A stretch of DNA of 64,000 nt from IMG/VR virus record IMGVR_UViG_3300027759_000045, positions 124,001-188,000 of that record; one strand, given 5' to 3'. Of the stretch, positions 630-24,445 are shown one piece after another; position 1 is the stretch's first letter; the number at the start of each line of letters is the position of its first letter. The notes beneath the pieces were generated by a model. That model was given only the letters and a program-made list of their open reading frames with translations. It ran no database searches and was not told the DNA's origin. The translations under genes were made by a program, and so were the position numbers.

Positions 630-641
630 TTAAGGAATTGT

Positions 642-6422: not shown

Positions 6423-7479
6423 CAATCTCCGTACAGAGATTCTAGACGTCACCGACGAAGTTCTTCGCGGTGGCCAACTCATGAACGGCAACAATACTGC
6501 AGAGTTTGAATCATGGTTGGCTCGAAAGAACCATGTACGCTATGCAGTAACTTGTCATTCTGGCACACACGCACTTGAGATATTGGCCGGATATTGGGCC
6601 ACGGAATCTCCTGTGCCGCATCCTCCTACTGTGTTAATTCCTGCAATGACTTACGTGGCCACTGCCAATGCATTTATACGTGCAGGATGGGATATACACA
6701 TCATTGACACAGATGCACAGGGATTAATCGATCTTACTAAAATTCCCACAGGCATAAGTTACCAAGCAGTGGTGTTGGTCGGTCTATATGGCGCCGCTGT
6801 CACACATCACGGCAGTGTTCGTACCTGGGAACACTGGATACAACATGATACTCTCGTAATTGAAGATGCTGCCCAACATTGGTTAGCTGCCGACTGCACA
6901 AGGATAGGCAAAGGTGGTGCAGCCATCAGTTTTGATCCTATGAAAAATCTTGCTTGTTATGGCAATGGCGGTGCTGTGGTCACAGACAACTTAGATCTAG
7001 CAGAATATGCTAGATCGTGGCGAGACAATGGTAAACCTACACATAAGAACACAGGAACTAACAGTCGCATGAGCGAATTAGACTGTGCGCACATGTTGGT
7101 TAAATCCAAACACATCGATCGTTGGCAAGCACGTAGACAAAAGATCTCAGACCACTGGGCAGATCGGTTTAAAGACACTGGAATACGTTGTTTAATCAAC
7201 GACACCAATGCACACAATCATGCGTTTCATAAGTTTGTTATTGATGTTGACAAACGAGATATATTAAAAGCCAATCTTGCACTGTGCAAAATTGACACGC
7301 GAGTACACTATGCGACTCCATTGCAAGAAATCAGTTTGTATCGTATGTTTCCAGGACCTGACATGTTGGCAGCAAGTTCTAGTCTAGCTCGGCGTGTACT
7401 AAGCCTGCCTATCTACCCCGAACTTACAGACCTAGAAGTCGAATACATCAGCGATCAGGTTGTAAACTGCGTCGCATAA
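6370..7479 (+). CDS. DegT/DnrJ/EryC1/StrS-family PLP-dependent sugar aminotransferase (start uncertain: ATT 6370 or 6391, or ATG 6481)
   Basis: SGTHAL, TYVATANA, IEDAAQ, SFDPMKNL (PLP lysine), GNGGAV and LSLPIYP. Family-like sequence IPFTGLRKQY continues upstream of the first ATG. Confidence 0.92.
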   Translation: MTSTGLTIPFTGLRKQYNNLRTEILDVTDEVLRGGQLMNGNNTAEFESWLARKNHVRYAVTCHSGTHALEILAGYWATESPVPHPPTVLIPAMTYVATANAFIRAGWDIHIIDTDAQGLIDLTKIPTGISYQAVVLVGLYGAAVTHHGSVRTWEHWIQHDTLVIEDAAQHWLAADCTRIGKGGAAISFDPMKNLACYGNGGAVVTDNLDLAEYARSWRDNGKPTHKNTGTNSRMSELDCAHMLVKSKHIDRWQARRQKISDHWADRFKDTGIRCLINDTNAHNHAFHKFVIDVDKRDILKANLALCKIDTRVHYATPLQEISLYRMFPGPDMLAASSSLARRVLSLPIYPELTDLEVEYISDQVVNCVA

Positions 7480-10279
7480 ACGCATAACTGGCCAACCAAG
7501 ACCACTCATAGCTCTTCTTCAAGTCTGCAAAGTTGCCGGCTACTTGGTCGTAGTATTCCACAGCATCTTCGGCGCCCCATTGACTCCATTCGGCATTTTT
7601 AGCTTCACCAGCATTGCTGAGCCACATGTTAAGTCTGTATTCACTTTCGACATCGGGTAAACTGGCTTTTAATTTAAGAACTTCACGGAATGCAGTGCGC
7701 CAAGCTGTCCAAGGTGTTTCATTATAATTGGCTACACCACTAAGCACGGGCACAACTTCGTGCGGTTGATCTAATGTAAAGTCCAATCCTGCTCCAGTAT
7801 TCTTCAACACCATTTTTTTGTTGTAGGCAATCATGGCTTGGTGACCATATGTTAATCCATTTACAGGATTGTATGCGTGGAAGATATAGTGTTTGGGTTG
7901 TTGCATACGATCAGGTTGCCAGGTCCAATCAAACATTTGATTCACTTCTAGCTTGGCAAACACAGCAAAGAACCAAGGCGTGGTGCTGGCTCTAGCAGCC
8001 GCATGATACGCTGCCACTCGTCCATTTACACCTTCTACCACATGAACGCGGTTTGTGTACCTTGACTCGTTGGCCAGATATATTGTCATCTGCAAATAAT
8101 TAGATCCAGCATTAGGTTCGCCATTGCTGATAAACACAATGTCCAATGGTTGATCTGTTAACTTGCGATGTGTTCGATCTATGTGTGTGTAGTCATACAA
8201 CTGTGTGCGAATGTCACCTACTGCTACTCTCGGCACAATTACACTAGTGGCACCTGAACTTAGTGGCACAATAGTTTTGGTCTCTTTGCGCCACAAAGGC
8301 ACAGTAAACACATCAGAGCACACAGTGTCTACAGTGGTAAATGTGGCCAATGGACCCGACCATGTTGTGTTTTTAACTACATCAACATGACTGTCTTCTG
8401 TGTGTTGGATCACAGGCATGGGTCTGCGTGGAACACGAATTTTAGGCACATAGTTTACACTGTACCATTCCAGCAGAGCTTTCTTTTCTGCACGAGCCGC
8501 AAATGTAGGAACATGCATATAAAATGTATCTCCAAACTTTTGTTCATTGCTGGCAAATACATGTAGCATGGTACTTTGCCATTTTTCTGGATGCCACGAA
8601 AAGTCAAAGTCTGTGTAGTCACAAATACTGCTACACACCCATACAAACTCATGCTCACCAACAAGACTCTTTGCCAACCGTATCAGAGTATCTCTATAGT
8701 TGTCAAAGTAACGCACCTTCTTTATGGCTCCGGGAACTTGTCCTCCAGCACCATCCAGGTGATCTATTTCAATAACAGGAACTGTGACTGTTTCAATCTT
8801 GATCTCTACATGCTCAAGGTATTTGATTTCTGTTGCGCCTGACACATGATACTGTGGACCACCGGTCTTTTGCCATTGTGTAGCAAACTGATAGATGTAA
8901 GCGGGTTCGCCAGGATCCGGAACCCAAGTGAAGTCCACGTGTTCTTCACGCACACCCTCAGGTAGCACCCACATTGTTTTGTTGGGTAATAGTGCGGCTC
9001 TGGGGTAGTCCATGTACTTGACGGGCAATTCTTGATCCTGGGGCTCAGAACAATAACGCAACATGGGCATTTTCTCTGCAGGCCAGTGTTGATTTCCAAA
9101 CACATATATCATAGGCGGCTCTCCTGGATCGGGCTGCCAAGAGTAGTCGAACTCATAATCATGATGACTGATGTTGTCCCAGTGTAGCTGTGTTTCCGGC
9201 AACTGAGCACGTGGGTAATCCATGTACTTGTGTTCAGTAGCACCAGGCACAGTGTATGTAACAGTGGGCATGATCTCTGCTGAATGCCACTGATTACCAA
9301 ACACGTAGATGTAGGGTGGATCTCCTGGATCTGGAATCCATGAATAATCCCAGTCGCACTGTTGTATAGTGTGCCACTTGTTGTCTTGCCGTACAGGTAA
9401 TTTAGCCCGGGGATAATCCATGTACTTGCGTTCAGTGGCATGGCCCACACAGTATTCCACTGTGGGCATGATCTCTGCTGTGTGCCATTCATTGCCAAAC
9501 ACATATATGTAATCTGGATCTGTAGGATTGGGTCTCCAACTATGATCAAAGTCAGCAATATCGTGCAACACGCCGAAGTCTGCAGGACTAGATGCTACAG
9601 TAGCCACAATATTATCTACATACTTGATTTCTGTGCTGCCAGGCACTGTATAAACTATAGTAGGTTCTAATACTCCAGGATTCCATTGATTGCCAAACAC
9701 ATACGTATAAGGAGGATCAAAAGGATTTGGTTCCCAAGAATAATCAAACTTGCTCACTGCCAGGTTATGCGCAAACAACTGTGGCTGTGGTAATCTCGTT
9801 GTTTTTAAATCCATGTATTTGCGTTCTGTTGCTCCAGGAACAACATACTCTACACTGGCTTTATATTCAGGCGAGTTCCACTGATTACCAAATACATAGA
9901 TATAAGGTGGCTCTGCTGGATCTGGATGCCAGGACCAATCCCATGCCTCTTGATCTATTGTTTCGTGTATTTTCCATGAATCTTCATTGTTAATTCTATG
10001 CAATACTACATCAGTGTGATAGGTTGTGTCTGTATAACCTGCCGCAGGAACAAGATACGTGCCGGAATCTTTTTGCCACTGACTTGCCCATGCATGTCGT
10101 TGGTGTGCTTGCCAAGGCACAGGTTCCCAAAGAAAATCAAAGCCAGAGTAGTCCGATAAGTAATTTACAAACCAAAAGAAACGTGTGCGACTCTGCTGTT
10201 GTGCTTGTTCAATGGTATCTACTGCCTGCTCATGCGCAAACAAATTGGGCTTTTTTCCAGAATAAAATACATCAAACAT
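7448..10279 (-). CDS. Trp/Pro-rich repeat protein with C-terminal glycosyltransferase-like domain
   Basis: Six tandem repeats of about 65 aa. The C-terminal domain aligns by eye with the 30134-31060 protein (VEGVNG..AAYHAAA, NPVNGLTYG, AWRTAFREVLKL). Confidence 0.75.
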   Translation of the reverse strand: MFDVFYSGKKPNLFAHEQAVDTIEQAQQQSRTRFFWFVNYLSDYSGFDFLWEPVPWQAHQRHAWASQWQKDSGTYLVPAAGYTDTTYHTDVVLHRINNEDSWKIHETIDQEAWDWSWHPDPAEPPYIYVFGNQWNSPEYKASVEYVVPGATERKYMDLKTTRLPQPQLFAHNLAVSKFDYSWEPNPFDPPYTYVFGNQWNPGVLEPTIVYTVPGSTEIKYVDNIVATVASSPADFGVLHDIADFDHSWRPNPTDPDYIYVFGNEWHTAEIMPTVEYCVGHATERKYMDYPRAKLPVRQDNKWHTIQQCDWDYSWIPDPGDPPYIYVFGNQWHSAEIMPTVTYTVPGATEHKYMDYPRAQLPETQLHWDNISHHDYEFDYSWQPDPGEPPMIYVFGNQHWPAEKMPMLRYCSEPQDQELPVKYMDYPRAALLPNKTMWVLPEGVREEHVDFTWVPDPGEPAYIYQFATQWQKTGGPQYHVSGATEIKYLEHVEIKIETVTVPVIEIDHLDGAGGQVPGAIKKVRYFDNYRDTLIRLAKSLVGEHEFVWVCSSICDYTDFDFSWHPEKWQSTMLHVFASNEQKFGDTFYMHVPTFAARAEKKALLEWYSVNYVPKIRVPRRPMPVIQHTEDSHVDVVKNTTWSGPLATFTTVDTVCSDVFTVPLWRKETKTIVPLSSGATSVIVPRVAVGDIRTQLYDYTHIDRTHRKLTDQPLDIVFISNGEPNAGSNYLQMTIYLANESRYTNRVHVVEGVNGRVAAYHAAARASTTPWFFAVFAKLEVNQMFDWTWQPDRMQQPKHYIFHAYNPVNGLTYGHQAMIAYNKKMVLKNTGAGLDFTLDQPHEVVPVLSGVANYNETPWTAWRTAFREVLKLKASLPDVESEYRLNMWLSNAGEAKNAEWSQWGAEDAVEYYDQVAGNFADLKKSYEWSWLASYAFMRRSLQPDR
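8810..9950 (-). repeat. Six tandem coding repeats, consensus [FW]DYSWxPDPxxPPYIYVFGNQW...PTVxYxVPGATExKYMD
   Basis: Seen directly in the translation; ends are approximate. Confidence 0.9.
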
Positions 10280-11393
10280 GATAAGAATAGACGAGATTTA
10301 TAATAATACCTTTTGGCCTTGGTTACATAAAAATAAACCAGGTACGAGATTGTTTTTTTGTGATCCGCCGGGAAGAACCGACCCGGATGCTTTATTTAAC
10401 TTGGGCAGTGATGACATTGTAGAAACCGACTACGTGTGGATGCACGATCAAGAACCGTGTTGGACGGAAGAATATCGGCCATTGTTTGATGATGTAGCAA
10501 GACGGAATACGGACTTGTGGTGGCATCAATACAATCAAGTAAAACCAGAACAATTTGGACATGTTGTTGTAAGCGAGCGCGGCGAGTATGTTGAGCAACT
10601 TTGTGCCGCATATGGATGGAAAAGTCACTATTATTTTTACCATGGGTGGGCTTGTCAAGACTGGTTCCGTGGATATGATAAGTCATTCTTAATTCCTCGT
10701 GCAAGAGATCGTGCGCCCACAAAAACTTTTATGAGTCCCAATCGTATCGTAGGCGGCAAGCGTGATCATCGTGTGTTGTTTTTGTATAATATATTCAAAC
10801 AAGGGTTAGAGCATAATCATATCAGTGTGCCACGAGTATGCCAATACGAAAATGTTGACATAAGTGTTGTGGCCAACAAGTATTGTAACACATATCCAGA
10901 TATTTCGCAAGTGTTTGAAAGTGCCGCTTTACCGAGATTGTTTGAAGGAGAAGAGTCACAACAAATGACCAGTTGTTGGCTAGGCAACTATGCAGAAGCA
11001 CAAGACAGTTTGGTATATGTTCCTACCGAAACTGTATACTTTGGCCGCAGAACACACATAACAGAAAAAACATTTAAAGCAATTGCATTAGAAATGCCAT
11101 TTGCATTGGTTGCACCTGCCCACAGTTTGGAGTATATGCGCAGTTACGGATTTAAAACATTTAATGACATATTTGACGAAAGTTACGACACCGAAACTGA
11201 TGACGTACTGCGTGTAGAAAAGGTTACTCGATTATTAAAAGACTTAGACAATCAAAGTGCGAGAGAACGTCAATCAATACATCGTGCATGTTTACCTATA
11301 GTGGAACACAACTTCCGACACTTTTACATGGGCGGATTAACAAATATATTATGGCCGGAACTAACTGGCATGCTCCATGGCTTACGCAAATAA
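10278..11393 (+). CDS. Glycosyltransferase-like protein (ET...TEK..K...PF family), paralog 1
   Basis: ETVYFGRRTHITEKTFKAIALEMPF...GFKTF...DESYD resembles the GT10 donor-binding E...Y.TEK motif. Confidence 0.55.
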   Translation: MIRIDEIYNNTFWPWLHKNKPGTRLFFCDPPGRTDPDALFNLGSDDIVETDYVWMHDQEPCWTEEYRPLFDDVARRNTDLWWHQYNQVKPEQFGHVVVSERGEYVEQLCAAYGWKSHYYFYHGWACQDWFRGYDKSFLIPRARDRAPTKTFMSPNRIVGGKRDHRVLFLYNIFKQGLEHNHISVPRVCQYENVDISVVANKYCNTYPDISQVFESAALPRLFEGEESQQMTSCWLGNYAEAQDSLVYVPTETVYFGRRTHITEKTFKAIALEMPFALVAPAHSLEYMRSYGFKTFNDIFDESYDTETDDVLRVEKVTRLLKDLDNQSARERQSIHRACLPIVEHNFRHFYMGGLTNILWPELTGMLHGLRK

Positions 11394-12564
11394 CTTTGTT
11401 GCTGACCGCATAGTTCGTAACAAAGCATATCCAGCACTGGCACGTTGGTCGGCACAGCCATACACCTCTGAGTGGAGACAATTTGTACAGCATTGGCCCA
11501 ACACAGTTCCTGCTGAGTTGTACGAACATTTCAACACACACAGCATAGAGTACAAGTTATCTGACTTTAACAATATCGTTACAGGATCTTACTACACAGT
11601 AGGGCTAGGTTTTTTTAACTTTGATGTTGACTACTTTGCCTTAATGACGGAAGTAGTGCGACGTCAGTTACGCCGCGAAGAACTAACTGTGCTGTTTTAC
11701 TATCACGAAGGCGACAATCCATTCCGTATCCGAGATCGACTAGATGAACTGTGTCAAAATCATTTGCTGCCGCCTAACTGCTACCGGTTTGTCAGTGGCA
11801 ATACAGCAGCCAATGGCATTCCAGGCTTTGCATATTTTCCAGATCACGAACTTCTATACTGGCATCGTAATCAACAAATACCCCCAACACCCGTACACTC
11901 AAATAAACGATTGCGCGACTTTACAGTACTAAGCAGAACACACAAATGGTGGCGTGCCACTGTGATGACAGACTTGCATCGTACAGGGTTGTTGAACAAT
12001 AGTTATTGGAGTTACGGAACTGACGTTGCTACAGACGAAGCCGAAACTGACAATCCTATTGAAGTTGACACTCTTGGAATCAGGACAGATATTGAACAAT
12101 TTTTAAGCAACGGCCCGTACACATGCGACACACTTACACCGGAACAACACAACGATCATCACTTAATAGAAACCAATCATTTCACAGATAGTTACTGTAA
12201 CATCATATTAGAAACACATTTTGATGCAGACGGGTCAGGCGGTGCGTTTTTAACTGAAAAAACATTCAAAGCAATCAAACACGGACAACCTTTTGTTGTG
12301 GTGGGCTGTGCAGGATCCTTGTCTGCATTGCGAGACCTAGGATATCGCACATTCGATCACGTTGTGGACAACAGTTACGATACTATACAAGATAATACTG
12401 AACGTTGGATTGCAGTGCGCAACACAATCACTCAATTAAAGTCGCAAAACTTACACGCCTGGTTTGAATCCTGTCGAAGTGATGTTGAACACAATCAACA
12501 GTTATTTTGTAGCACAAAAGCCGGCAGATTAAATACTCTATTAGAAAGAATACACAATGATTAA
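11377..12564 (+). CDS. Glycosyltransferase-like protein (TEK family), paralog 2
   Basis: ETHF...FLTEKTFKAIKHGQPF...GYRTFDHVVDNSYD. Confidence 0.55.
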   Translation: MAYANNFVADRIVRNKAYPALARWSAQPYTSEWRQFVQHWPNTVPAELYEHFNTHSIEYKLSDFNNIVTGSYYTVGLGFFNFDVDYFALMTEVVRRQLRREELTVLFYYHEGDNPFRIRDRLDELCQNHLLPPNCYRFVSGNTAANGIPGFAYFPDHELLYWHRNQQIPPTPVHSNKRLRDFTVLSRTHKWWRATVMTDLHRTGLLNNSYWSYGTDVATDEAETDNPIEVDTLGIRTDIEQFLSNGPYTCDTLTPEQHNDHHLIETNHFTDSYCNIILETHFDADGSGGAFLTEKTFKAIKHGQPFVVVGCAGSLSALRDLGYRTFDHVVDNSYDTIQDNTERWIAVRNTITQLKSQNLHAWFESCRSDVEHNQQLFCSTKAGRLNTLLERIHND

Positions 12565-13576
12565 TTCCTACACCAGTTGGCAACCCTTAGAAGAAGTTAT
12601 TGTAGGTCGTGCATACAGCCCAGACTACTTTGACTTCATTGAAGATCCGCAAGTGCGTAACCAATTACAACAGATCTTACACGAAACAGAAGAAGATTTA
12701 AATAACTTGCAAAAGACAATTGAAACTTATGGTGCTCGTGTACGTAGACCTAATTTGCCGCCCAAGGATCAATTTGTATGGTGGCAAACAGAAAACGGTG
12801 GTGCACCGCTGCCTCCACTGACTCCGCGTGATTGGCAAATCAGTCTAGGACAAAAGTTACTGCGTGTGTTGCCAATGGAAGAACTGGACGACATTTGTGC
12901 AGAATATGCAGACCAAGTGATCAGTCCACACAACGGTCGCTGGGATGCTGACTGCATTCTTAACCAAGCAAGTGCCAGTTGTATTGTACGTGTAGGGCGT
13001 GACGTATTCTTTGACAACAGTGATTATCTAAAGCCAGAACAAACTCGTTGGATTGTGGACAACTGCTTGGGCCCAGAGTATCGTATACACGAAGCAGTAA
13101 CAGACGGCCACGGCGATGCTGTGTTTGCTATTCTCAAGCCTGGTGTTATCTTGTCCAGCAAGCACGATGTTAACTTAGACTTAGCCAAGGACTTTCCAGG
13201 GTGGGAAGTGCTAAAGATTTGGGACTCAAGTATCTGGGCCGCAATGGAAATAGGCAAGTTCAAATACGAACAAAGTCCCGGAGCATGGTATGTGCAAGGG
13301 CAAACGCCCACACAGGAGTTTACCAAGTTTGTAGACACCTACTTGAACAAGTGGACCGGCTTTGTTGCTGAAACAGTATTTGATGTCAACTGTTTAGTGC
13401 TGGATGAAGAAAATGTTATCTTCAGTGCTTACAATAGAGATGTGTTTGATTTCTGTAAACAGCATCGTATTAATCCTATTATCAGTGAACTGCGTCACAG
13501 TTACTTCTGGGACGGTGGCATCAGTTGTTGTACACAGGATTTGACACGCCGAGGCGGTTTAGAAACATATCTATAA
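12557..13576 (+). CDS. Amidinotransferase (glycine/inosamine-phosphate amidinotransferase superfamily)
   Basis: N-terminal NSYTSWQPLEEVIVG, TPRD, HGDAVF..LKPG, FDVNCL and C-terminal GGISCCTQDL.R with the catalytic Cys. Confidence 0.85.
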   Translation: MINSYTSWQPLEEVIVGRAYSPDYFDFIEDPQVRNQLQQILHETEEDLNNLQKTIETYGARVRRPNLPPKDQFVWWQTENGGAPLPPLTPRDWQISLGQKLLRVLPMEELDDICAEYADQVISPHNGRWDADCILNQASASCIVRVGRDVFFDNSDYLKPEQTRWIVDNCLGPEYRIHEAVTDGHGDAVFAILKPGVILSSKHDVNLDLAKDFPGWEVLKIWDSSIWAAMEIGKFKYEQSPGAWYVQGQTPTQEFTKFVDTYLNKWTGFVAETVFDVNCLVLDEENVIFSAYNRDVFDFCKQHRINPIISELRHSYFWDGGISCCTQDLTRRGGLETYL

Positions 13577-14607
13577 TGTTTGTCATTCCAATTGCTAACC
13601 AGCACTCGTACAATTCAATACCGCGTAATGCAGATTTAAAATTAACCATTGACAATCACTGCAATGCGCCCAGTCGCCAATTGGTTATAGACTGGAAAGG
13701 TGATTGTTTTGTATGTGGGTGCGAAGCATGGTTACCGATCAGTGTGGGACAAATTTCAGACTTTGATTCATTGGCCAGTGTATGGAATAGTAATACAGCG
13801 TTGGCATTACAAGCAGATATTGATTCCGGTGCATATACACATTGTGCTGTTGATCGGTGTGGTGTGGTACATGCCAGCAAGATAGACAAAACACACGTGG
13901 TCAGTATCAATGTTGACGAAAGTTGTAACCTACGTTGTCCCAGTTGCAGACCTGCGGCAATAATGATCAACTCAGGTCCCGAATATGATCAAAAACTAGC
14001 ACAGGTACAACACATACGCCGATTGTTAGAAGAGTTTGCAGAGCCCTGTCACATTGTGATGAGTGGCAACGGAGATCCATTGGCCAGTGCTATTATGCGT
14101 CCATTGATACGAGAGTTTCGGCCCGGCCACAATCAAACTATTCGGCTGTTCACCAATGGCCTATTGCTAAAAAAACAACTAGATGATTCTCCTATCCTTG
14201 ATCACATCACACAGTATTTTATCAGCATAGATGCAGGCTCTGCTGGTGTGTATGAACGTGTGAGATTAGGCGGGCAATGGTCTCAATTGATTGCTAACCT
14301 AACTTGGTTGCAAGACACTGCTAAACGTACAGGTGCAGAAGTACTGTTAAAGTTTGTGCTACAACAAGACAACTATCAAGACATGCAGAACTTCTGTCGA
14401 CTATGTGTTGATATGGGCTTTAGTGGTGTTATCAATCGACTAGAAGATTGGGGCACCTGGGCCGATTACGCTGTGCATGATGTGATTGGTAACGCCGAAC
14501 ATACAGATCATCTGGCGGCCATGTATTTCTTAACCAGTGCATACTCAGAGTATGCAGGGCGTATACAGTTTAATCCCAGTCTAGAAGAAATGTGTCATGC
14601 CCAATAG
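13576..14607 (+). CDS. Radical SAM enzyme with N-terminal Cys-rich (SPASM/twitch-like) domain
   Basis: CNLRCPSC, GNGDPL, TNG and ISIDA. ATG 13576 overlaps the previous TAA. Confidence 0.88.
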   Translation: MFVIPIANQHSYNSIPRNADLKLTIDNHCNAPSRQLVIDWKGDCFVCGCEAWLPISVGQISDFDSLASVWNSNTALALQADIDSGAYTHCAVDRCGVVHASKIDKTHVVSINVDESCNLRCPSCRPAAIMINSGPEYDQKLAQVQHIRRLLEEFAEPCHIVMSGNGDPLASAIMRPLIREFRPGHNQTIRLFTNGLLLKKQLDDSPILDHITQYFISIDAGSAGVYERVRLGGQWSQLIANLTWLQDTAKRTGAEVLLKFVLQQDNYQDMQNFCRLCVDMGFSGVINRLEDWGTWADYAVHDVIGNAEHTDHLAAMYFLTSAYSEYAGRIQFNPSLEEMCHAQ

Positions 14608-15385
14608 ACTCAAAACTTCCGCGGCGGTTATCGTCATTGATGCATGGCCAGATCTGGTTGGCCACTGGCCTTATTCAATGTTAAAAAACCTAACAGAGTT
14701 TATTCAACAAGATTTTGTGAAGTGTATAGTAGTCGCATCTTACTCAGAATACACAGTTCACGGAACAACAGCAACGCCGATAGAGTCGCCAATTTGGCAC
14801 AACAGTCGACAGGTTTTCAATCCCGATCTCAATCCTGCTGTTCCGGCCTACACAGGTTCAGCCTGGTTGGCACAAGAACATGCACAGATAATTTCTAACA
14901 ACCATCATGGCCCTGTTGTAAATCAATTTATACTTCATGATACACCGGTCACTAATCCGGCTGTGTTAACTATGTCTCTTAGACAGGATCAGAAAATGTT
15001 TGCGGCCTGGACTCTGGACCAGGTGGTATATTTGCTCAATTCACAGTATCCCGACGTTGAAAATATATATCTGTGTGGTGGATCATTTGAACAGTGTCTA
15101 TCCAATCGACCGGTGGGGGTGAAATCACTGATGGTTGCAATGAATTTAAATCAGTTTAACAATGTTCAACGTTTATTAATTCCACCTAAATGTGTTTACA
15201 CCGACAGTGGCAAATTATTAAATGATGAATTAGAACTGATCGATCCAAACTGGTATTATAATCAAGTACAAGACTTGATTCATGTACAACTCCGACCGTT
15301 GCGTGAACAAACTACTAGTAAAGATGTTCTGGCAGCATTAGATCTTGAACAGATGGCAACCAACAAGCGGCATGGCTTAGACTAG
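14597..15385 (+). CDS. Possible isochorismatase/cysteine-hydrolase-fold protein
   Basis: AAVIVIDAW near the N-terminus and IYLCGGSFEQCL match the family's Asp and G-x4/5-C pattern. Confidence 0.45.
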   Translation: MPNRLKTSAAVIVIDAWPDLVGHWPYSMLKNLTEFIQQDFVKCIVVASYSEYTVHGTTATPIESPIWHNSRQVFNPDLNPAVPAYTGSAWLAQEHAQIISNNHHGPVVNQFILHDTPVTNPAVLTMSLRQDQKMFAAWTLDQVVYLLNSQYPDVENIYLCGGSFEQCLSNRPVGVKSLMVAMNLNQFNNVQRLLIPPKCVYTDSGKLLNDELELIDPNWYYNQVQDLIHVQLRPLREQTTSKDVLAALDLEQMATNKRHGLD

Positions 15386-15407
15386 AAACTAAAAAAGACG
15401 TGGGCTA

Positions 15408-16673
15408 TTATAGGTGTGTCAGCCACGGAAACAACAGTTTCCAATCGGTGCCACGACGGCGATCTATTTCAGTTAGATAAACTTTCAAATCAGCAACACG
15501 TTCTGCGTTGCGCGGTCCTGCCACAATCTGTTTCATAATGCCACGCATGTGTTCTTTAGCACTGACTTCGCTGGGATTGCGTTCTCGCATTGCGGCCAAC
15601 AGACGCTCGAAGTCCTGTTCAAACACACCTGGTCCAAATATGTCTGGAACCATTTCAGGCGGTGTCATTACACTCATGAAACTGTAGCTAATAGGATTCC
15701 ACGGGTTTCGACGATCGTTCCATTCGTTTATCTTTTCTACTAGCTCAGGTGCTGTTTTAATTGTCAATGCCGACACTGCACTGTTCACGCACATCACAAC
15801 CCAGTCTTTATCCAGTAGATATTCCCAGTTTTCTGTCCACTCAGCCAAGTCTAGTCCCCACCGCACATACTCTTCTTGTGGTCCCCAGGCATCTATACTA
15901 CCTGTGATTTGCAATCGTTTTAGTGCGCCAGACTCAACCATCTTGCCAAATCGATCAATGTAGGCTCGGAACTTTTTAGGAGGTACCTTTAGGTTGGTAA
16001 TAATGTTGAATGTGAGTTCGGGATTGGGGTGACTCTCCCAGAAGTCCATGCTGATGTCAAATTCATCCTGGAAGAAAGGCTCGCCGCCTAGTATTTGATA
16101 GTAGCGTATGTGTTTGTAACGATCTTTCTCTTCAAGATAACGCCAAAAGTCTGCTAACATGCGCTCATAGTTGGGATTAGATTGTGTGTTATGCCCAAAG
16201 TTTACATTGCCTTGTGTAAACACACCAAATCGTCGGTTCTCTTCTTCCCATTTTGTACTAAAGTGACTGCCGCAATACAAGCAGGCCATGTTGCATACAT
16301 TGTTGAAATATACTTCTAATATGGTAGGTACAACTTCTAATGTAGCTGGATCTTCAAACAACTCGTGTGGAGTGCGATCTAGGTCATGACGAGCATGCAA
16401 TTGATATTGTCTATCGCTCATGCCGCCGGCTGTTTCAATTTTCTCACAGTATTGACAACCACCCTGTGGCCATTCGCCACGCAACATCATTTGCCTGGCT
16501 TCTATTTTGTTTGGCAGGTTATGAAAACTTTCAAAATTATCCGGAGGTATGGGTTGTTGGTCTGTGCGATGGCAACTGGCACTTGTGCCTTGATTTAAGT
16601 ACACAGTACTCCATGCCCACTTGAGCAAGCATCCTGTGTCTGTTTTGATTGGAAATACTTGTTTATCAGTCAT
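15408..16673 (-). CDS. Radical SAM enzyme with N-terminal twitch-like domain
   Basis: CLLKW...SCHR...CQYC, then CNMACLYC and GGEPF. Confidence 0.9.
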   Translation of the reverse strand: MTDKQVFPIKTDTGCLLKWAWSTVYLNQGTSASCHRTDQQPIPPDNFESFHNLPNKIEARQMMLRGEWPQGGCQYCEKIETAGGMSDRQYQLHARHDLDRTPHELFEDPATLEVVPTILEVYFNNVCNMACLYCGSHFSTKWEEENRRFGVFTQGNVNFGHNTQSNPNYERMLADFWRYLEEKDRYKHIRYYQILGGEPFFQDEFDISMDFWESHPNPELTFNIITNLKVPPKKFRAYIDRFGKMVESGALKRLQITGSIDAWGPQEEYVRWGLDLAEWTENWEYLLDKDWVVMCVNSAVSALTIKTAPELVEKINEWNDRRNPWNPISYSFMSVMTPPEMVPDIFGPGVFEQDFERLLAAMRERNPSEVSAKEHMRGIMKQIVAGPRNAERVADLKVYLTEIDRRRGTDWKLLFPWLTHL

Positions 16674-18181: not shown

Positions 18182-18279
18182 TTGTAGATAAAAGGATCTC
18201 GCTTGCGTAGTTCTTTTAGTTTTTTACGATAGCGTATTTCTAAACAAATACGATTGTATAAATTTTTAATCCAGTTCAT
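18178..18279 (-). CDS. 33-aa basic peptide ending DPFIYK, coupled to the carbamoyltransferase (not in ORF track)
   Basis: Hand translation MNWIKNLYNRICLEIRYRKKLKELRKRDPFIYK*. It starts 1 nt after the upstream stop, has SD AAGGA, and overlaps the downstream gene by ATGA. Confidence 0.75.
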   Translation of the reverse strand: MNWIKNLYNRICLEIRYRKKLKELRKRDPFIYK

Positions 18280-18280
18280 A

Positions 18281-19348
18281 TCATGTCCTTTGTATTATTT
18301 TAATTTGTTGGTCTGCATAATCTGCATCTGTCCAGTTATAACTGTATGTAGCTGTTGCATTGCTGGTGCGTATTTTATACACATCAAGATGCGTTCCCAA
18401 CATGTTCCATATATCTACATAGTTATCTGTTCCAAAACTACGGATCAAATCTACCTGAGCCACCTGCGGATGTCCAATGGTCAATGTTTTATCGTCTGGA
18501 TCAAATCCATTGTTTATTAACCATGTTCTAAAGTCTGCCAAATGCTTCTTTTGCCAGTCATGTGGGCCAGGATTGTTTGCCCACTCTATATCAAAATCAC
18601 CAGCAGCTTCAAGTTGACTACGCATGGTTGTGGTTGTTAAAGTATCAATGATCATATTGGGATTATAGTTGGCCTCGTCCACAAATACTTCCCAATGGTG
18701 TTTGCCCACAGCCTTATTTACGCCTACAAAAACTCCACCCAGTGGCCTATTGATTGTTTCAATTCCAAACAGTTCATAATCTTGTTTATCTAATAGAAAT
18801 CGTGGTGCGTGTAACCAACACATGAGTTGACTAGGTCGTTGCCATGCAGGTGCATAAAGTGCTTTGCGCATACTGAGAACAAGACTTTCGTATTCATGAC
18901 ATAACAAATTTAATTGTCTTATATGCCATCGTGTAGTAGAATCTGCTTTGGTATAAAAAGGACTCATTGCACCCGATACACCTTGTAAATCTTCAAAGTA
19001 ACGATGTAGATAGTTTAACTTATCATGTATTAACGTTGTATCAGGCGTAATAGTATTAGCAGTTGAGAAATAATCGTCAATTTGATATCCAATGTTGGCA
19101 GCATTAATGGCAGCAATACTACTGTTCATTTGTTCAGTCAAGTATTCTGCGTTGCGCTGACTTTGTGTAAATCCAAAAAAACAGTAATTCTTTTCCAAAT
19201 GATAATTGTCACGGATCAGGGTATTTAATGCGGCAAGCCATTTGTGACTCAGGCTGTTGTCCGCCACATCTATATGCACAGTGAGCAGACTATCTTTTCC
19301 GCGCAGGTCTATTTCAATTTGATCTATCATTGTATATTCATCCACCAT
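18281..19348 (-). CDS. Hypothetical protein
   Basis: 355-aa ORF in the operon; LNYLHRYFEDLQG and LNLLCHEYE His/Glu helices could bind metal. Confidence 0.75.
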   Translation of the reverse strand: MVDEYTMIDQIEIDLRGKDSLLTVHIDVADNSLSHKWLAALNTLIRDNYHLEKNYCFFGFTQSQRNAEYLTEQMNSSIAAINAANIGYQIDDYFSTANTITPDTTLIHDKLNYLHRYFEDLQGVSGAMSPFYTKADSTTRWHIRQLNLLCHEYESLVLSMRKALYAPAWQRPSQLMCWLHAPRFLLDKQDYELFGIETINRPLGGVFVGVNKAVGKHHWEVFVDEANYNPNMIIDTLTTTTMRSQLEAAGDFDIEWANNPGPHDWQKKHLADFRTWLINNGFDPDDKTLTIGHPQVAQVDLIRSFGTDNYVDIWNMLGTHLDVYKIRTSNATATYSYNWTDADYADQQIKIIQRT

Positions 19349-20625
19349 TTTAATACATCAGGCCGGCTGCTCAGTATGTCTGTCATTGTGACTTGTTGTG
19401 TACGTATCTGTTCTAATTTTAACACACGTGCCTTGCCTTTTGCAATACCTGCGGCATACTGATCCGGCCATTGTTCAGCAAACGTAGGGCGTGTGCGTAG
19501 TTGAATTAACATGTCTCGCATCACTTGTGTGCGACATTGCGGTAACATTTCGTCAATCCAATCATGTAGCAATTCACGCGGCAATGCTAACGGACTCATA
19601 ACAATGTCAGGACCGAAACTGAATATCACTTTGGCCAACAGTTCTACTCCATACGTTTGCGCTAACGTTTCCATTGCACCAATCTCAAACATGCCTGGAA
19701 GAGTCAGCGTAAAGTCCAACCGCATCTGTCTACGATTTTTTTGGTACTTTAACCCTTCTTCAAAGTTTTGACAGAACTGTGAATAATCAAGTCCTGTTCT
19801 GATGTATTCTCCGATGTGTCCGGTTCCGTCAAGGCTGGCACAAATCTGCCAGTCACGTATGTTGGTCAAAATGTCACGATATAAATTAACGCCACGATAC
19901 TCAATGCGACTAAGATTGGTGTTATATCTAGCATATAGCTTAGGTCCATCTCCAAGTTCTACAATTCTTTTCATATACCGCCAATGTTGTTCATACATTA
20001 AAGGTTCTCCGCCCACCCAATAAATCTCTTCTACACGGTGTTGTTCTACTGCTTCGGCAAATTCTGACTCAATTTGCTCATCTTGAAACTTGGTTATTTC
20101 TTGACGTATTTCTGTGCGCATCCAATTGTTCTTAGGATTGTGCCAGTTGGTCATGTCATGTGTCTTTTGCTCTGTTTCCCATGCACTACTTAACATGTCT
20201 CCGCAGGTTCTACATTTAAAGTTACACAGGTTTGAGAAACGGTAATCCCAACTAACTGGTTTCATCGTGGTATACCCTGTGCTGTCTGTAGTAGTAACTG
20301 CATCGTCATATTTGTGTTTGAATAAATGCCAAAAATAACTGCGGTAAACATCAGTGTTTAACAGTTTACTATTACACACGTCGCATTCTGGTAATGTTTC
20401 GCCTGCCATCATTCTACGTCGAACTGATCGCATGTGATCACTGTTCCAGTGTTGCTCTAGTGTAACAGGCGTGTACCGGCCAGAGCCTGCAGATGTGTCA
20501 ATATACTGCTCAAAACTCTGTGCAGGTTCTCTGGAAGCGCAACACATACGCCGTTCTGTTTGTGGACTTAGATACGTGTGTGTCCATGGCGCCATGCACA
20601 ATGTATCAGGCTTTGTTGTAGTCAT
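19327..20625 (-). CDS. Radical SAM enzyme with N-terminal twitch-like domain
   Basis: CMAPW...MCC...CDVC, then CNFKCRTC, GGEPL, YNTN and ASLDG. Confidence 0.9.
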   Translation of the reverse strand: MTTTKPDTLCMAPWTHTYLSPQTERRMCCASREPAQSFEQYIDTSAGSGRYTPVTLEQHWNSDHMRSVRRRMMAGETLPECDVCNSKLLNTDVYRSYFWHLFKHKYDDAVTTTDSTGYTTMKPVSWDYRFSNLCNFKCRTCGDMLSSAWETEQKTHDMTNWHNPKNNWMRTEIRQEITKFQDEQIESEFAEAVEQHRVEEIYWVGGEPLMYEQHWRYMKRIVELGDGPKLYARYNTNLSRIEYRGVNLYRDILTNIRDWQICASLDGTGHIGEYIRTGLDYSQFCQNFEEGLKYQKNRRQMRLDFTLTLPGMFEIGAMETLAQTYGVELLAKVIFSFGPDIVMSPLALPRELLHDWIDEMLPQCRTQVMRDMLIQLRTRPTFAEQWPDQYAAGIAKGKARVLKLEQIRTQQVTMTDILSSRPDVLKWWMNIQ

Positions 20626-21826
20626 AATTGATCAATGCCGCAAACTCTGGTGCCACATCTGCTAAGTTTTGTTTTCGTTTGTAATCAAAGTCGCGCAGGT
20701 TCATTCGCAACAGATTTCCATCTAGGCTATTGCCACGATTCATAAACTCAGCCGCACTCACAAATTCTTTAAGTATCTTAGGCGGAACGCTTGCAGAGGT
20801 CAGTTGTTTAGTAATTTCTGCTTTGGCCGATTCTGGCAGTGTGCTGATACTAAAGTAATAGGCATCGTGCATCATGTTCCAGTAAATAAAATCAAATCCC
20901 TGTTGTACAAGCCAATTGGCCACTGTTTCGAGATAGTACACATTGAATACATTAATGGTGCAACAGGCCTGCAGAGTAATGTTGCTGTTGCGGCTGCGTA
21001 GTTGACGGAAACGTTCAACATTCTCCACAACTTCTGTCCACACAGCATTAGTGCGTTGATATTCAAAACGTTCAGCAACATCGTCGATGCTGACAGCAAT
21101 CTCTACATGTTTGAAATGTTTCCAGATTGCCTCACCTTCATCTGGATATTGTGTGCCATTGGTATTGTAATGTATTTCGACTTGTGCGGCACGTCCAGTA
21201 TCTACTAACTTTTGTAGCAGTTGGAAATGTTCTTTGATCATAAAAGGCTCGCCGCCAGTAAATTCAATGTAGCGTATGTTGTCCAGGTGCTGGTCTAGGT
21301 CTGTCCAGAACTCTGCGCTTTCTCTAGGCCAGGCACCGTCCTTCAGCATTTGATAAGCAAAGTTGCCACGAGTGTCTTCTGCACGATTATATTTAATTTC
21401 TTCCGCGGCGAACTGGCTACTGCTCCACGAACCACAAATGCGACATTTTAAGTTGCAGATGTTGCCCAGTTTAAGATCAAGGAACATCAATGGCATAGCA
21501 TCCGTGGTCCAGGAAACATCTGTGTCAATCATGTGCTTGAGTCTGTCTAGTGTATGCATACGTTTACTTGTGCGACCTGCACGTTCTTCGTTCCAGCAAC
21601 GCCGGCAGTTTTGCGGCTTTTTGCCAGCAAGAAAGTCTTCACGCAGAGTTTTCATTGCTTGACTATTTTGTATTTCAACTAATCCAGTAGAGGCCAGTTT
21701 ATATTTGTCACCAGCATCGTTGGTAATTTCATCCATGGCCAAACAGCATGGTCGCACAGTGCCAACAGGACTAGCCTCTAGACTGATCCAGGGTAACACG
21801 CAAAAAGTGTCATGTGGTATGTTCAT
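20606..21826 (-). CDS. Radical SAM enzyme with N-terminal twitch-like domain
   Basis: CVLPW...PCC...CRRC, then CNLKCRIC, GGEPF and YNTNGT. Confidence 0.9.
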   Translation of the reverse strand: MNIPHDTFCVLPWISLEASPVGTVRPCCLAMDEITNDAGDKYKLASTGLVEIQNSQAMKTLREDFLAGKKPQNCRRCWNEERAGRTSKRMHTLDRLKHMIDTDVSWTTDAMPLMFLDLKLGNICNLKCRICGSWSSSQFAAEEIKYNRAEDTRGNFAYQMLKDGAWPRESAEFWTDLDQHLDNIRYIEFTGGEPFMIKEHFQLLQKLVDTGRAAQVEIHYNTNGTQYPDEGEAIWKHFKHVEIAVSIDDVAERFEYQRTNAVWTEVVENVERFRQLRSRNSNITLQACCTINVFNVYYLETVANWLVQQGFDFIYWNMMHDAYYFSISTLPESAKAEITKQLTSASVPPKILKEFVSAAEFMNRGNSLDGNLLRMNLRDFDYKRKQNLADVAPEFAALINYDYNKA

Positions 21827-23106
21827 TTAATTGCTCTTAGTTCAGGTAATACATCAAGCACATGTTCTCGTCTAATGCTGTCAAGCTCGTGCGTCTTGCG
21901 CCAAAAAGTGTCTAGTAGATGTGTGTTGTCAGTGCTGTTCATAAATGTAATAGCACTTTCAAATCCCACAGTGGCACGATTTAATTGATCCAATGGGCGC
22001 AACCATTCTAAGTGTTGCTCATACTTAGATTGTATTTGTTGTTTGTACTCTGCAGGTGCGATGTCGATACGCAAGTATGCAGGGTCTTGAAGTATGTTCA
22101 CGTTGAGATCCTGAGGTTTTAATAAACCTTTTTCTACCCAGTCTCTGTGAAAGTCAGGAAGATGCAGTGCATTCATTATACTCAATGTAGGACTGATATA
22201 AAAGTCTACCCTAGGGCATATTTCCATCATCTGTCTACGATTAGATTCTACCACAGCCCAGTCTGTGCCTTTACGTATATACTCACCTCGTGGACCCGAC
22301 GCATCAAGGCTTGCACCAACTGCCACGCTGTCAAATTTGCGCCAGTAATCAAACACTGTGCGGTCTTTAAGACGTGTCTGTGTAAAGTTAGTATTGTATA
22401 TTAGTCTAACATCAAAGCGACCACGACGTTCTAGTTCTTCTAGAATCCGGTAGTGCTCTTCCATCATCAAGGGTTCGCCGCCGGCAAAGTAAATCTGCTC
22501 CACGTGATCAATATGCTCAATCAGCTGTTCCCACAGATCAGTGGCAAAACGACCAGCATAGTTAAGAGGTTTGTTTTGACTGGCCCAAGCGGATCCTGCT
22601 AATTCTGTTTGATCTTTGTACCAACTTGAACTAAAGATATGCCCACAACTACGGCAACTTAAATTGCAAAGATTACTAAACCGCAGATCCCAATAGGTCA
22701 TTTCAAATTGATCAACATGCCCAGCAGCATCTGTATTGTCTACACGGGCAACATGGTGCCCGTGGTGCTTGTTGGCACTTTTACGTCCACTGAAAAATCC
22801 TGATTCTTCCTGTTCGTAGCAACGGCCACAGGTAGGATTAGGTGTTTCGGCCAGCATGTCAACTCTGAGTTGTTTTTGTTCGGCACTGTTCCATATTTCT
22901 GCCAGTGTGTTTGATCTGCAGTTGCCAATTTGGCCCACACCCATTTCGGCATGACAGCAAGGATATGCTTCGCCTGTGGGATATGCGTGTAAGTGTATCC
23001 AAGGGTAGATGCAAAATGTTTTGGAATCTTTTAATAAAAATTCTTCACGTTCTGAAAGTTCTGTTGGACGTACTAAATCTGTTGAATTATATTTGTATTG
23101 AGTCAT
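21823..23106 (-). CDS. Radical SAM enzyme with N-terminal twitch-like domain
   Basis: CIYPW...PCC...IGN...CGRC, then CNLSCRSC and GGEPL. Confidence 0.9.
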   Translation of the reverse strand: MTQYKYNSTDLVRPTELSEREEFLLKDSKTFCIYPWIHLHAYPTGEAYPCCHAEMGVGQIGNCRSNTLAEIWNSAEQKQLRVDMLAETPNPTCGRCYEQEESGFFSGRKSANKHHGHHVARVDNTDAAGHVDQFEMTYWDLRFSNLCNLSCRSCGHIFSSSWYKDQTELAGSAWASQNKPLNYAGRFATDLWEQLIEHIDHVEQIYFAGGEPLMMEEHYRILEELERRGRFDVRLIYNTNFTQTRLKDRTVFDYWRKFDSVAVGASLDASGPRGEYIRKGTDWAVVESNRRQMMEICPRVDFYISPTLSIMNALHLPDFHRDWVEKGLLKPQDLNVNILQDPAYLRIDIAPAEYKQQIQSKYEQHLEWLRPLDQLNRATVGFESAITFMNSTDNTHLLDTFWRKTHELDSIRREHVLDVLPELRAIK

Positions 23107-24445
23107 ACCATGTTGATAATGTTACGTCTAACGAATAACTGTCTTTAAATGTATCTTTAAAACTTTTTCCGCGACGTTGATCGTACTGTGTGTAAAACTG
23201 CTTAAAATCATTGTGTAACTTAGGCATATCAAATGCGTCTGAATGCGGAGTTTTTACTACATCTAAATAATCAATTAATCTCTGTAGGTGATTAATCTCG
23301 TGTTCGTGCAGTATGTCAGGAACCGCTTTCCATCGCTGTAGGAAATTAGATAAGTCAAGCATGTGACGTGTAAGCAATGCCCGGGGCAATACCAGTGGAC
23401 TTTGAAAACTGGGAAATCTCAATATATTTAATGTAAAGTTAACACGTTCACGACCATACTTTGATTTAAGTTGTACTACGTAATGCAGAAGCATTGGCAA
23501 CGTTGTCAAGCACAATGCATTAATGGTGGCCATTATGTGTACTGCACCCACATGACTGTCTAGTAATTTAACTACATTTTTTTCCCAAGCAGGATAATCT
23601 AGTCCATCTCGAATATATTCAGCGGCAGCGCCAACAGCTTCCATGGATGTGTAAATTTCCACATCCAATCCTTGAGTGCTTTCAATTAATCTATCCACGT
23701 CAACATCTGCACCAAGATTAGAATTAATTGCTAACCGGGTGGTCGATCTACCGGGATTGTTTTTAAACCAGTCAATCAATTTCCATGTCTCGGCACTCAT
23801 TAGCGGTTCGCCGCCGGTGATTCTCAGTTCTTGGAGTGTTTGGTGAAGGTCAGTTTCCCACCATTTAAAAAACGCTTCAACATAGGGATTAGTTTCACCA
23901 AGCCGGTATAGTTGACTGCTAGCGTGAGCATGAGTAAAGTGGTTACGCCCATCAGACACCAGGCCGACATAAGGTCCGCTTCGCTTGATATCATTGACCC
24001 ATGTGCTACTGAAAGCAGGGTTACAATAGCTACAAGCAAATTGGCAAGTGCGATCGAACGCAATTTCAAGTGTGCGAAGATTGACATCTTCGGTGTGTGG
24101 GGTGTTATATGCTTCATCTAAGGCCTTTATAGGATAAATTTTACTTTTGTACACACGGTCTGATACGGAATCTTTGCCCATGTCTTCGATCTTCCAACAG
24201 TATTCACAACCTGAGGGACGTTTCCCTTCCAACATCAGTCGTCGATCATCTTTTTTCTTTGCAGTGTTATGCAATGCAGATGGATTAATTTTTAATTGTT
24301 CAACATCGATTGCGTGTGCTGGAGGGTGATGACAGCTGGTGGTCTGGCCCGAACCTAGCCATATGGTGGCATTGTACCATTTGGCCGCACAAAAACTTGC
24401 ACTCTTGGTGTCTAAAATTTCATGTTTAAAGTCTAAATCGTTCAT
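23087..24445 (-). CDS. Radical SAM enzyme with N-terminal twitch-like domain
   Basis: CAAKW...SCHHPP...CEYC, then CQFACSYC and GGEPL. Start at ATG 24445 (MNDLDF) is preferred to avoid a 119-nt overlap. Confidence 0.88.
   Translation of the reverse strand: MNDLDFKHEILDTKSASFCAAKWYNATIWLGSGQTTSCHHPPAHAIDVEQLKINPSALHNTAKKKDDRRLMLEGKRPSGCEYCWKIEDMGKDSVSDRVYKSKIYPIKALDEAYNTPHTEDVNLRTLEIAFDRTCQFACSYCNPAFSSTWVNDIKRSGPYVGLVSDGRNHFTHAHASSQLYRLGETNPYVEAFFKWWETDLHQTLQELRITGGEPLMSAETWKLIDWFKNNPGRSTTRLAINSNLGADVDVDRLIESTQGLDVEIYTSMEAVGAAAEYIRDGLDYPAWEKNVVKLLDSHVGAVHIMATINALCLTTLPMLLHYVVQLKSKYGRERVNFTLNILRFPSFQSPLVLPRALLTRHMLDLSNFLQRWKAVPDILHEHEINHLQRLIDYLDVVKTPHSDAFDMPKLHNDFKQFYTQYDQRRGKSFKDTFKDSYSLDVTLSTWYDSIQI

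Follow-up and report, generated by a model that had tools for sequence, protein, structure and literature searches.

The DNA analysed here (the window) is a stretch of 64,000 nucleotides corresponding to positions 124,001 to 188,000 of IMG/VR virus record IMGVR_UViG_3300027759_000045. It includes a cluster of 20 genes spanning ~24 kb, with genes for sugar-type and radical S-adenosylmethionine (SAM) enzymes, that starts beside the gene for ThyX and ends beside virion genes. One gene of this cluster (Table 1) is a single unbroken open reading frame (ORF) with an ATG start and a TAA stop, and its 339-residue product is, by sequence and modelled fold, clearly a homologue of the amidinotransferases AGAT, StrB1, HsvA and SxtG. 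An earlier reading of the sequence (the original prediction) had described an AGAT/StrB-type protein at this position and had proposed that it converts the amino-sugar product of a nearby DegT-family aminotransferase to a guanidino sugar.

Neither Pfam, searched up to E≤10, nor NCBIfam includes a family that matches the ORF, and PHROGs returned a single unannotated family (2e-11). A phmmer search of the PDB sequences found only amidinotransferases, namely AGAT (3.5e-14), StrB1 (2.3e-13), HsvA (9.3e-13) and SxtG (2.1e-10), with an alignment in three pieces, at the N-terminal strand, around the His/Asp residues and around the C-terminal Cys. The profile of a family alignment of 62 diverse relatives, which are 27–83% identical to the window protein, matched the same four enzymes at E values of 8e-35 to 1e-31 and retrieved from the PDB (E≤0.01) nothing beyond amidinotransferases and no hydrolase.

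The AlphaFold2 model calculated from the 62-sequence alignment was confident (predicted local distance difference test score, pLDDT, 91.8; predicted template modelling score, pTM, 0.92). Foldseek placed StrB1 (PDB 1bwd), HsvA (5wpi), SxtG (6u1r) and AGAT (1jdw) at the top with E values of 3e-21 to 2e-19 and template modelling (TM) scores of 0.66–0.68, which identifies the pentein alpha/beta-propeller fold. Among hydrolases of the same fold (DDAH, arginine deiminase and agmatine deiminase), the best match was at 4.4e-10, as compared with 3.3e-21 for StrB1, and none of the Pfam models for the hydrolase families (arginine deiminase, DDAH, agmatine deiminase and PAD type) matched the ORF. The closest relatives are thus not guanidino-group hydrolases by PDB profile, Foldseek or Pfam. 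As the profile search and the Foldseek search with the confident model both rank amidinotransferases first, the observation of an AGAT/StrB-type protein in the original prediction was correct, far beyond chance. The protein is probably a genuine amidino-transferring enzyme.

The C-terminal catalytic Cys that had been pointed out earlier corresponds to Cys324, which aligns with the nucleophilic Cys of AGAT and is kept in all 62 relatives, and its motif is shared by all but one of 120 close relatives. The counterparts of the AGAT His-x-Asp segment are His185 and Asp187. In the 62-sequence alignment, Asp187 and Arg331 are invariant, His185 and Asp92 are each present in 61 sequences, and Arg91 is present in 60. 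The aligned residues of AGAT are presumed to be catalytic from the structures of AGAT and StrB1, which were reportedly described by Humm et al. in 1997 and Fritsche et al. in 1998.

The genes of the cluster are listed in Table 1. The amidinotransferase gene lies in a forward-strand operon with the order u371, u395, amidinotransferase, radical SAM and u262, in which all junctions overlap. Its coupling to the neighbouring genes, as claimed in the original prediction, was seen in the reading frames, with u395 overlapping the start by 8 nucleotides and the radical SAM gene beginning in a TAATG overlap at the end. The latter encodes 343 residues from this ATG or 360 residues from an upstream TTG. 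The co-location with a sugar aminotransferase and a carbamoyltransferase was likewise borne out by the Pfam matches of both.

Table 1. Genes of the cluster that includes the amidinotransferase homologue, in window coordinates. SDR, short-chain dehydrogenase/reductase; PLP, pyridoxal phosphate; GT, glycosyltransferase (text only).
Gene product	Coordinates	Strand	Basis
NAD-dependent SDR (epimerase/dehydratase family), 322 residues	5454..6422	+	Pfam Epimerase 2e-44, GDP_Man_Dehyd 4e-32
DegT/DnrJ/EryC1/StrS-family PLP aminotransferase, 332 residues	6481..7479	+	Pfam PF01041 5e-56
u943, 943-residue protein of no known family	7448..10279	-	Repeats and a conserved C-terminal part of ~440 residues
u371, family without known relatives, first gene of the + operon	10278..11393	+	Paralogue of u395, u379 and u319
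u395, paralogue of u371	11377..12564	+	BLASTP to u371 1e-13, C-terminal 89 residues
Amidinotransferase homologue (AGAT/StrB1/HsvA/SxtG branch, pentein superfamily), 339 residues	12557..13576	+	Profile, fold, residues
Radical SAM, N-terminal SPASM/twitch	13576..14607	+	Pfam Radical_SAM 1e-7, SPASM 2e-6; CX3CX2C
u262, last gene of the + operon	14597..15385	+	No Pfam, PHROG or NCBIfam match
Radical SAM, N-terminal twitch (NF033640)	15408..16673	-	NCBIfam N_Twi_rSAM 2.6e-66; CX3CX2C
NodU/CmcH-type carbamoyltransferase, 503 residues	16670..18181	-	Pfam Carbam_trans_C 2e-48, Carbam_trans_N 4e-31
u355, conserved cluster member	18281..19348	-	No Pfam, PHROG or NCBIfam match
Three paralogous radical SAM, N-terminal SPASM/twitch	19327..20625, 20606..21826, 21823..23106	-	Pfam Radical_SAM, SPASM; CX3CX2C
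u485, radical SAM paralogue	23087..24544	-	CX3CX2C; BLASTP 3e-66 to the 466-residue paralogue
u379, third u371-family paralogue	24426..25565	-	BLASTP to u395 8e-14, to u371 1e-7
Radical SAM paralogue, 466 residues	25549..26949	-	Pfam Radical_SAM 5e-5; CX3CX2C
232-residue protein of no known family	Between the 466-residue and small radical SAM genes	-	Gene order
Small radical SAM, Fer4_12 type, 287 residues (cluster membership uncertain)	27634..28497	-	Pfam Radical_SAM 5e-9, Fer4_12 5e-5
u319, fourth u371-family paralogue, provisional cluster end	28490..29449	-	BLASTP to u371 3e-10, to u395 2e-9

The best NCBIfam matches of the short-chain dehydrogenase/reductase (SDR), both below the cut-offs, were RmlB-like (3e-33) and GalE (8e-29), and the protein includes a Ser-rich active-site stretch and the YxxxK motif. 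For the DegT-family protein, the best matches were PseC (1e-37), WecE-type (3e-29) and ArnB (2e-24), all below the cut-offs, and the Lys of the expected pyridoxal phosphate (PLP) motif is present. An intact SDR and an intact PLP aminotransferase of the kind that serves nucleoside diphosphate (NDP)-amino-sugar pathways are thus encoded upstream. NodU/CmcH-type enzymes carbamoylate sugar hydroxyls, and the carbamoyltransferase of the window fell into the PHROG 'Nol-like carbamoyltransferase' (5e-93). The second radical SAM protein of the amidinotransferase neighbourhood scored 224 bits against NF033640 (cut-off 170) and belongs to that family.

Eight ORFs of the window, in an array at 13576–28497, carry the CX3CX2C motif, and seven of them are mutually paralogous proteins with an N-terminal SPASM/twitch domain. 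The four u371-family paralogues (u371, u395, u379 and u319) are interleaved with the radical SAM genes. For u943, no match was found in Pfam, PHROG, NCBIfam or the PDB sequences. Its N-terminal half consists of at least six repeats of ~65 residues each with a Trp/Pro/Asp-rich core, and its homologues range from 548 to 1585 residues, with a widely varying repeat number and a C-terminal domain that is 73–93% identical. The start codons of u943 and u371, on opposite strands, overlap in a CATG palindrome (10277–10280) that leaves no intergenic promoter space; the start assigned to u943 by JGI lies downstream and gives 931 residues.

The close clade of the amidinotransferase, with 64–100% identity, was found on 52 IMG/VR contigs, many of them of 317–353 kb. 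The SDR and DegT genes lie upstream in all 41 loci with an upstream flank of at least 6.5 kb, and the carbamoyltransferase gene lies downstream in all 49 loci with a downstream flank of at least 5 kb, which makes this linkage stronger than could be known to the earlier reader. In 48 of the 52 loci, the gene that directly adjoins the start of the amidinotransferase gene belongs to the u371 family, and homologues of u943 (46/52), u355 (49/52), the three tandem radical SAM genes (44–50/52) and u485 (40/52) are also widespread. The trio beside the amidinotransferase gene varies, the first radical SAM gene being present in 12, u262 in 6 and the second radical SAM gene in 11 of the 52 loci. The cluster always has an SDR, a DegT protein, an O-carbamoyltransferase, several N-terminal-twitch radical SAM proteins and two to four u371-family genes. 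The amidinotransferase is its best-conserved member, with a median identity of 85% versus 51–72% for its neighbours and 72% for ThyX, and was shown to be under purifying selection.

In one locus (L009, 1–21017), an 83%-identical amidinotransferase is accompanied by a second, 31%-identical paralogue located between the SDR and DegT genes. In two others, the u371 homologue (L003:7722–8837) and the u262 homologue (L105:9123–9911) are each split into two ORFs by one frame break; these contigs are otherwise 100% identical to the window, and the breaks are most likely assembly or sequencing errors.

In the protein collection, 1,627 proteins matched the amidinotransferase at E≤0.001, and an exhaustive search at the same threshold gave 694 clusters at 50% identity. 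A scan with one conserved motif found the family on at least 581 viral contigs, and a like scan across 185,579 species, each represented by a single genome, found 15 loci. The latter lie on metagenome-bin contigs assigned to Saccharibacteria, Bacteroidota, Bdellovibrionota, Legionellales, Chloroflexota and an archaeon; as such contigs come from unrelated phyla, these loci are best explained as, and probably are, viral contigs binned with cells. The subfamily is almost wholly viral. Among cultured phages, the family proper was found only as ORF266 of Synechococcus phage S-SCSM2R (31% identity), and it is present on two marine single-cell viral contigs as well. A second, more AGAT-like lineage (22–25% identity) includes S-SCSM2R ORF309 and the proteins of Campylobacter phages.

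The identical protein is encoded by a JGI contig of 346,856 bp (3300027759, Ga0209296_1000007) and three other contigs. Baseplate, tail and virion genes within the window confirm the phage origin that had been claimed, and the baseplate wedge protein is 34–35% identical to those of the Rak2-like jumbo myoviruses Pectobacterium phage CBB, Yersinia phage fHe-Yen9-04, Agrobacterium phage Atu_ph07 and Xanthomonas phage XaC1. The virus is a ~347-kb freshwater jumbo myovirus that is distantly Rak2-like; the lineage is one of ~320–350-kb freshwater jumbo myoviruses. No nucleotide-level relative of the cluster turned up when 50,697 phage records were searched by megablast, and the only phage record matched by tblastn with one of the twitch radical SAM genes was that of Ralstonia phage RsoM2USA, at a place without annotation. 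An ORF of 4,855 codons (36730–51297, reverse strand) between the virion genes and the 1,144-residue baseplate wedge gene (51297–54731) presumably encodes a giant virion or fibre protein. The cluster is preceded (33–1949, forward strand) by a MoxR/CobS-like ATPase fragment and a DUF2201 metallopeptidase/VWA protein, and genes of these two types recur beside relatives of the amidinotransferase in L016, L044, L069 and L081.

A more distant set comprised 79 loci with relatives 30–38% identical to the window protein. A sugar-type neighbour was found in 30 of them (raw count). An SDR gene lies directly upstream of the amidinotransferase gene in three loci (L037, L075 and L083), and in L075 and L083 the order is a weakly glycosyltransferase (GT) 1-like gene, SDR, amidinotransferase and a DegT-like fragment. 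A UDP-glucose/GDP-mannose dehydrogenase gene lies two genes upstream in six loci, and u371-family and carbamoyltransferase genes are also among the sugar-type neighbours; u371-family genes were found near amidinotransferases in 20 loci. In S-SCSM2R, the order is DegT-like, radical SAM, glycosyltransferase, 2-oxoglutarate oxygenase, amidinotransferase and GT2, and a second amidinotransferase copy, ORF266, adjoins KdsA/KdsB.

Two distant loci (L016:4989–12361 and L081:1796–9068) carry tandem amidinotransferase paralogues in a block with genes for GTP cyclohydrolase I, a GMP-reductase/IMPDH-family enzyme, a phosphoribosyltransferase, a Vut_1 (YhhQ-type) transporter, a cupin, DUF6614 and a small radical SAM protein, which suggests purine or 7-deazapurine metabolism.

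From the homology, fold, catalytic residues and synteny described above, we infer an arginine donor, transfer rather than hydrolysis, and an amino-sugar acceptor. In the proposed reaction, Cys324 would attack the guanidino carbon of the donor, most likely L-arginine by homology with AGAT and StrB1, while Asp92 and Asp187 would hold the donor and His185 would serve as acid/base. Ornithine would leave, and the Cys-bound amidino group would pass to the primary amine of a second substrate to give a guanidino product. The acceptor may be the amine of a phage-made amino sugar, either nucleotide-linked or already transferred, and the product would then be a sugar with guanidino and carbamoyl decoration, carried by a virion protein, the host envelope or another molecule.

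A carbohydrate amino group is the best single guess for the acceptor because an SDR, a DegT protein and a sugar-type O-carbamoyltransferase are invariably encoded nearby, and because nucleotide-sugar enzymes and annotated glycosyltransferases recur beside phage amidinotransferases. Taken as a whole, an amidinotransferase acting on the amino group of a phage-made carbohydrate is the best explanation of the locus, and it is put forward tentatively. That the acceptor is specifically the amino sugar derived from the DegT reaction is a shade more doubtful. A further extension, in which the radical SAM array reshapes the carbamoylated guanidino sugar and u371-family proteins attach the sugar to virion protein or DNA, is speculative and rather unlikely.

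Several observations weigh against a carbohydrate acceptor, or against an enzyme of the standard kind. In the active site, three independent alignments equate the Asp of the AGAT triad with Ser139, and this column is variable among the 62 relatives (Ser 12, Asp 11, Asn 10, Ala 5, Glu 4, others). The residue before the catalytic Cys is His in AGAT and in 56 of the 62 relatives and Ser (Ser323) in the clade of the window, where 119 of 120 close relatives share this Ser. Relocation of the triad acid to residue 183 was considered and dropped, as positions 139 and 183 showed no pattern of complementation in the 62 sequences, 38 of which have no acid at either position. About 40–50 residues that precede the aligned triad position in AGAT, HsvA and SxtG are missing from the viral proteins. 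A spatial substitute for the triad Asp may lie elsewhere in the structure, and the active-site neighbourhood of the viral subfamily appears altered relative to the characterised transferases.

Other points concern the supply and use of the sugar. The active-site stretch of the SDR looks GalE/UXS-like and appears to lack the acidic pair typical of 4,6-dehydratases, which makes the keto-sugar step uncertain. Neither a sugar nucleotidyltransferase nor a recognisable glycosyltransferase Pfam family was found among the window ORFs. The original prediction had called the upstream genes glycosyltransferase-like, and this description was not confirmed, since neither Pfam nor the PDB sequences matched u371 or u395 and no fold match was significant. 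With u371, u395 and u943 as queries, nothing significant came from the PDB sequences in either single-sequence or profile mode, and 22 members of the u371 family had no Pfam match. The AlphaFold2 model of u371 was poor (pLDDT 54.7), and a Foldseek search with it found nothing significant, the non-significant top matches including GT-B enzymes at E values of at least 0.22. Comparison of the family with two annotated cyanophage glycosyltransferases by hhalign and BLASTP was also without significant result. Since all sequence, profile and fold searches were null, 'glycosyltransferase' remains a guess for u371 and u395; the family may consist of transferases and may resemble nucleotide-sugar transferases.

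The histories of the genes diverge as well. In three loci, the DegT gene is replaced by a 30–31%-identical member together with a second SDR gene, and the amidinotransferase is still 78–86% identical. In L155, the SDR (91%) and DegT (83%) proteins are close to those of the window, and the amidinotransferase is only 68% identical. The SDR-DegT and amidinotransferase modules recombine independently. Among the 79 distant loci, 49 have no sugar-type neighbour within the fetched flanks and most lack a DegT neighbour; the commonest arrangement, in 42 loci, is an operon with up to three small proteins. These partners (L010–L088) have ~165, ~144 and ~111 residues (e.g. L066:8762–9256, L088:11113–11544 and L029:1742–2074, respectively); the ~111-residue protein is DUF6614, and the ~144-residue protein weakly resembles (E 0.009) the C-terminal domain of arginyl-tRNA-protein transferase.

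Much of this evidence would fit an amidinotransferase that uses a small free amine, its position among sugar genes being a matter of genome packing. Glycine as acceptor gives guanidinoacetate, lysine gives homoarginine, and HsvA uses a polyamine. HsvA is as close to the window protein as StrB1 by profile and fold, and the small-protein operon and the rarity of sugar neighbours among distant relatives point in the same direction, as does the conservation of the amidinotransferase, which far exceeds that of the DegT protein and SDR and does not co-vary with them. Some of the 86–87%-identical proteins are labelled 'glycine amidinotransferase / scyllo-inosamine-4-phosphate amidinotransferase' by JGI, and surveys of auxiliary metabolic genes list viral K00613. 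Against it stand the invariant synteny with the SDR, DegT and carbamoyltransferase genes, the overlap of reading frames with cluster genes and the insertion of the L009 paralogue between SDR and DegT genes, and neither a guanidinoacetate methyltransferase nor a polyamine gene was found in the window. A small-amine acceptor is judged fairly improbable.

A product that is an aminocyclitol small molecule, streptidine- or bluensidine-like, and no glycan is still harder to credit. Here, the DegT protein would be an inosose aminotransferase, a twitch radical SAM enzyme a BtrN-like dehydrogenase, the amidinotransferase the equivalent of StrB1, and the carbamoyltransferase one of the bluensomycin type. 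In bluensomycin, one cyclitol carries both an amidino and a carbamoyl group, and StrB1 is the top fold match of the window protein. Inosose aminotransferases belong to the DegT family, as the Pfam family name reflects, and twitch/SPASM radical SAM genes are plentiful. In S-SCSM2R, a similar trio of 'inosamine amidinotransferase', DegT-like and radical SAM genes has been labelled 'antibiotic synthesis genes' (PMC12801897). However, searches of the window with Pfam, PHROGs and NCBIfam found no inositol-phosphate synthase, inositol dehydrogenase, kinase or phosphatase, the best NCBIfam matches of the DegT protein are the NDP-sugar aminotransferases named above, and an aminoglycoside-like product has no obvious use to a lytic jumbo phage.

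Transfer of the amidino group to a nucleobase or nucleic-acid amine, as a DNA hypermodification, or to lysines of a virion protein is similarly improbable. We know of no DNA modification that uses the amidinotransferase fold, no base-exchange enzyme, hydroxymethylase or Que gene was found in the window, and adjacency in T4-like genomes may be incidental. What speaks for such an acceptor is the position of the cluster between ThyX and the virion genes, the tandem copies of L016 and L081 in a block suggestive of 7-deazapurine metabolism, and the fully 7-deazaguanine-modified Campylobacter phages, which carry an amidinotransferase among radical SAM genes. In addition, the homologue ORF266 was detected in the proteome of purified S-SCSM2R virions (PMC12801897).

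Finally, a hydrolase of the deiminase or DDAH type, or another non-transferase of the same fold, is unlikely: the pentein fold and Cys/His/Asp chemistry do serve hydrolases (Foldseek ranks 8–50), and with a variable residue at the triad Asp position and Ser in place of the His before the Cys, the active site departs from that of the characterised transferases, but the PDB profile search returned amidinotransferases only, transferases are ahead in Foldseek E value by some ten orders of magnitude, and the hydrolase-family models of Pfam fail to match.

The known acceptors of amidinotransferases are few, namely glycine, lysine, inosamine phosphate, polyamines and toxin precursors, and a large subfamily found almost exclusively in viruses, which neither Pfam nor NCBIfam picks up, is of interest in this respect. 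Should the acceptor be a sugar, the cluster would represent the first virus-encoded guanidino-sugar route and would offer a handle on the role of the radical SAM genes of large phages, a question open since the Campylobacter phage genomes of 2010. If the further extension with the radical SAM array and the u371-family proteins held as well, the result would be an undescribed cationic guanidino-glycan or hypermodification, built around a virus-specific amidinotransferase subfamily in freshwater jumbo phages of an abundant lineage. Should the acceptor be a small amine, the gene would be an ordinary auxiliary metabolic gene, and even then the database labels as glycine or inosamine amidinotransferase should be treated as unverified.

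Amidinotransferases of this family are already known in phages from databases and papers, as labels and with no demonstrated function. The genomes of phages CP220 and CPt10, published in 2010, include a module of five radical SAM genes and a putative glycine amidinotransferase gene (PMC2853527), and the copies of CP220, CPt10 and CP20 lie among radical SAM genes; inspection of this gene context was uninformative. In the literature searched, no functional study came up for a characterised phage amidinotransferase, for a guanidino-sugar pathway or for radical SAM enzymes of the N-terminal-twitch family.

Among the characterised enzymes, StrB1 of Streptomyces griseus ranks first by fold (Foldseek 3e-21, TM 0.68; profile 1e-31) and is of similar compact size (348 residues versus 339), with an identity of only ~19%. 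StrB1 is an L-arginine:inosamine-phosphate amidinotransferase, and its acceptor is an aminocyclitol amine introduced by a DegT-family aminotransferase. The viral protein differs in lying in a radical SAM and carbamoyltransferase context in a phage, where no cyclitol-forming genes were seen. AGAT (GATM; 1jdw and mutants) matched the profile at 2e-34; it has His before the Cys where the viral clade has Ser, and its acceptor, glycine, has no support from the gene context. HsvA, the polyamine amidinotransferase of Erwinia amylovora, was matched at 9e-35 by profile and 1e-20 by fold, and SxtG of the saxitoxin pathway at 8e-35 and 2e-20, respectively. The acceptors of these two enzymes (a polyamine and a saxitoxin precursor) and their gene contexts are unrelated to the phage cluster. 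The SxtG cluster also includes a carbamoyltransferase, and the parallel with SxtG and SxtI may be read only as an analogy of co-occurrence. A saxitoxin-like pathway was rejected, as nothing else in the window resembles that of saxitoxin.

Annotated counterparts are found in phages. UniProt entry A0A6J5LX73 of an uncultured Caudovirales phage, named 'inosamine-phosphate amidinotransferase 1', shares the fold at a TM score of 0.88 with 32% identity. S-SCSM2R ORF309, matched with an hhalign probability of 99.5%, is flanked by glycosyltransferase genes as well as by a radical SAM gene and a DegT-like fragment. None of the annotated phage amidinotransferases lies in a cluster as large as that of the window or next to a carbamoyltransferase gene. 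New with respect to these known systems are how large the subfamily is and how far it is restricted to viruses, the altered surroundings of its active site, and its place as the best-conserved member of a large invariant cluster of jumbo phages.

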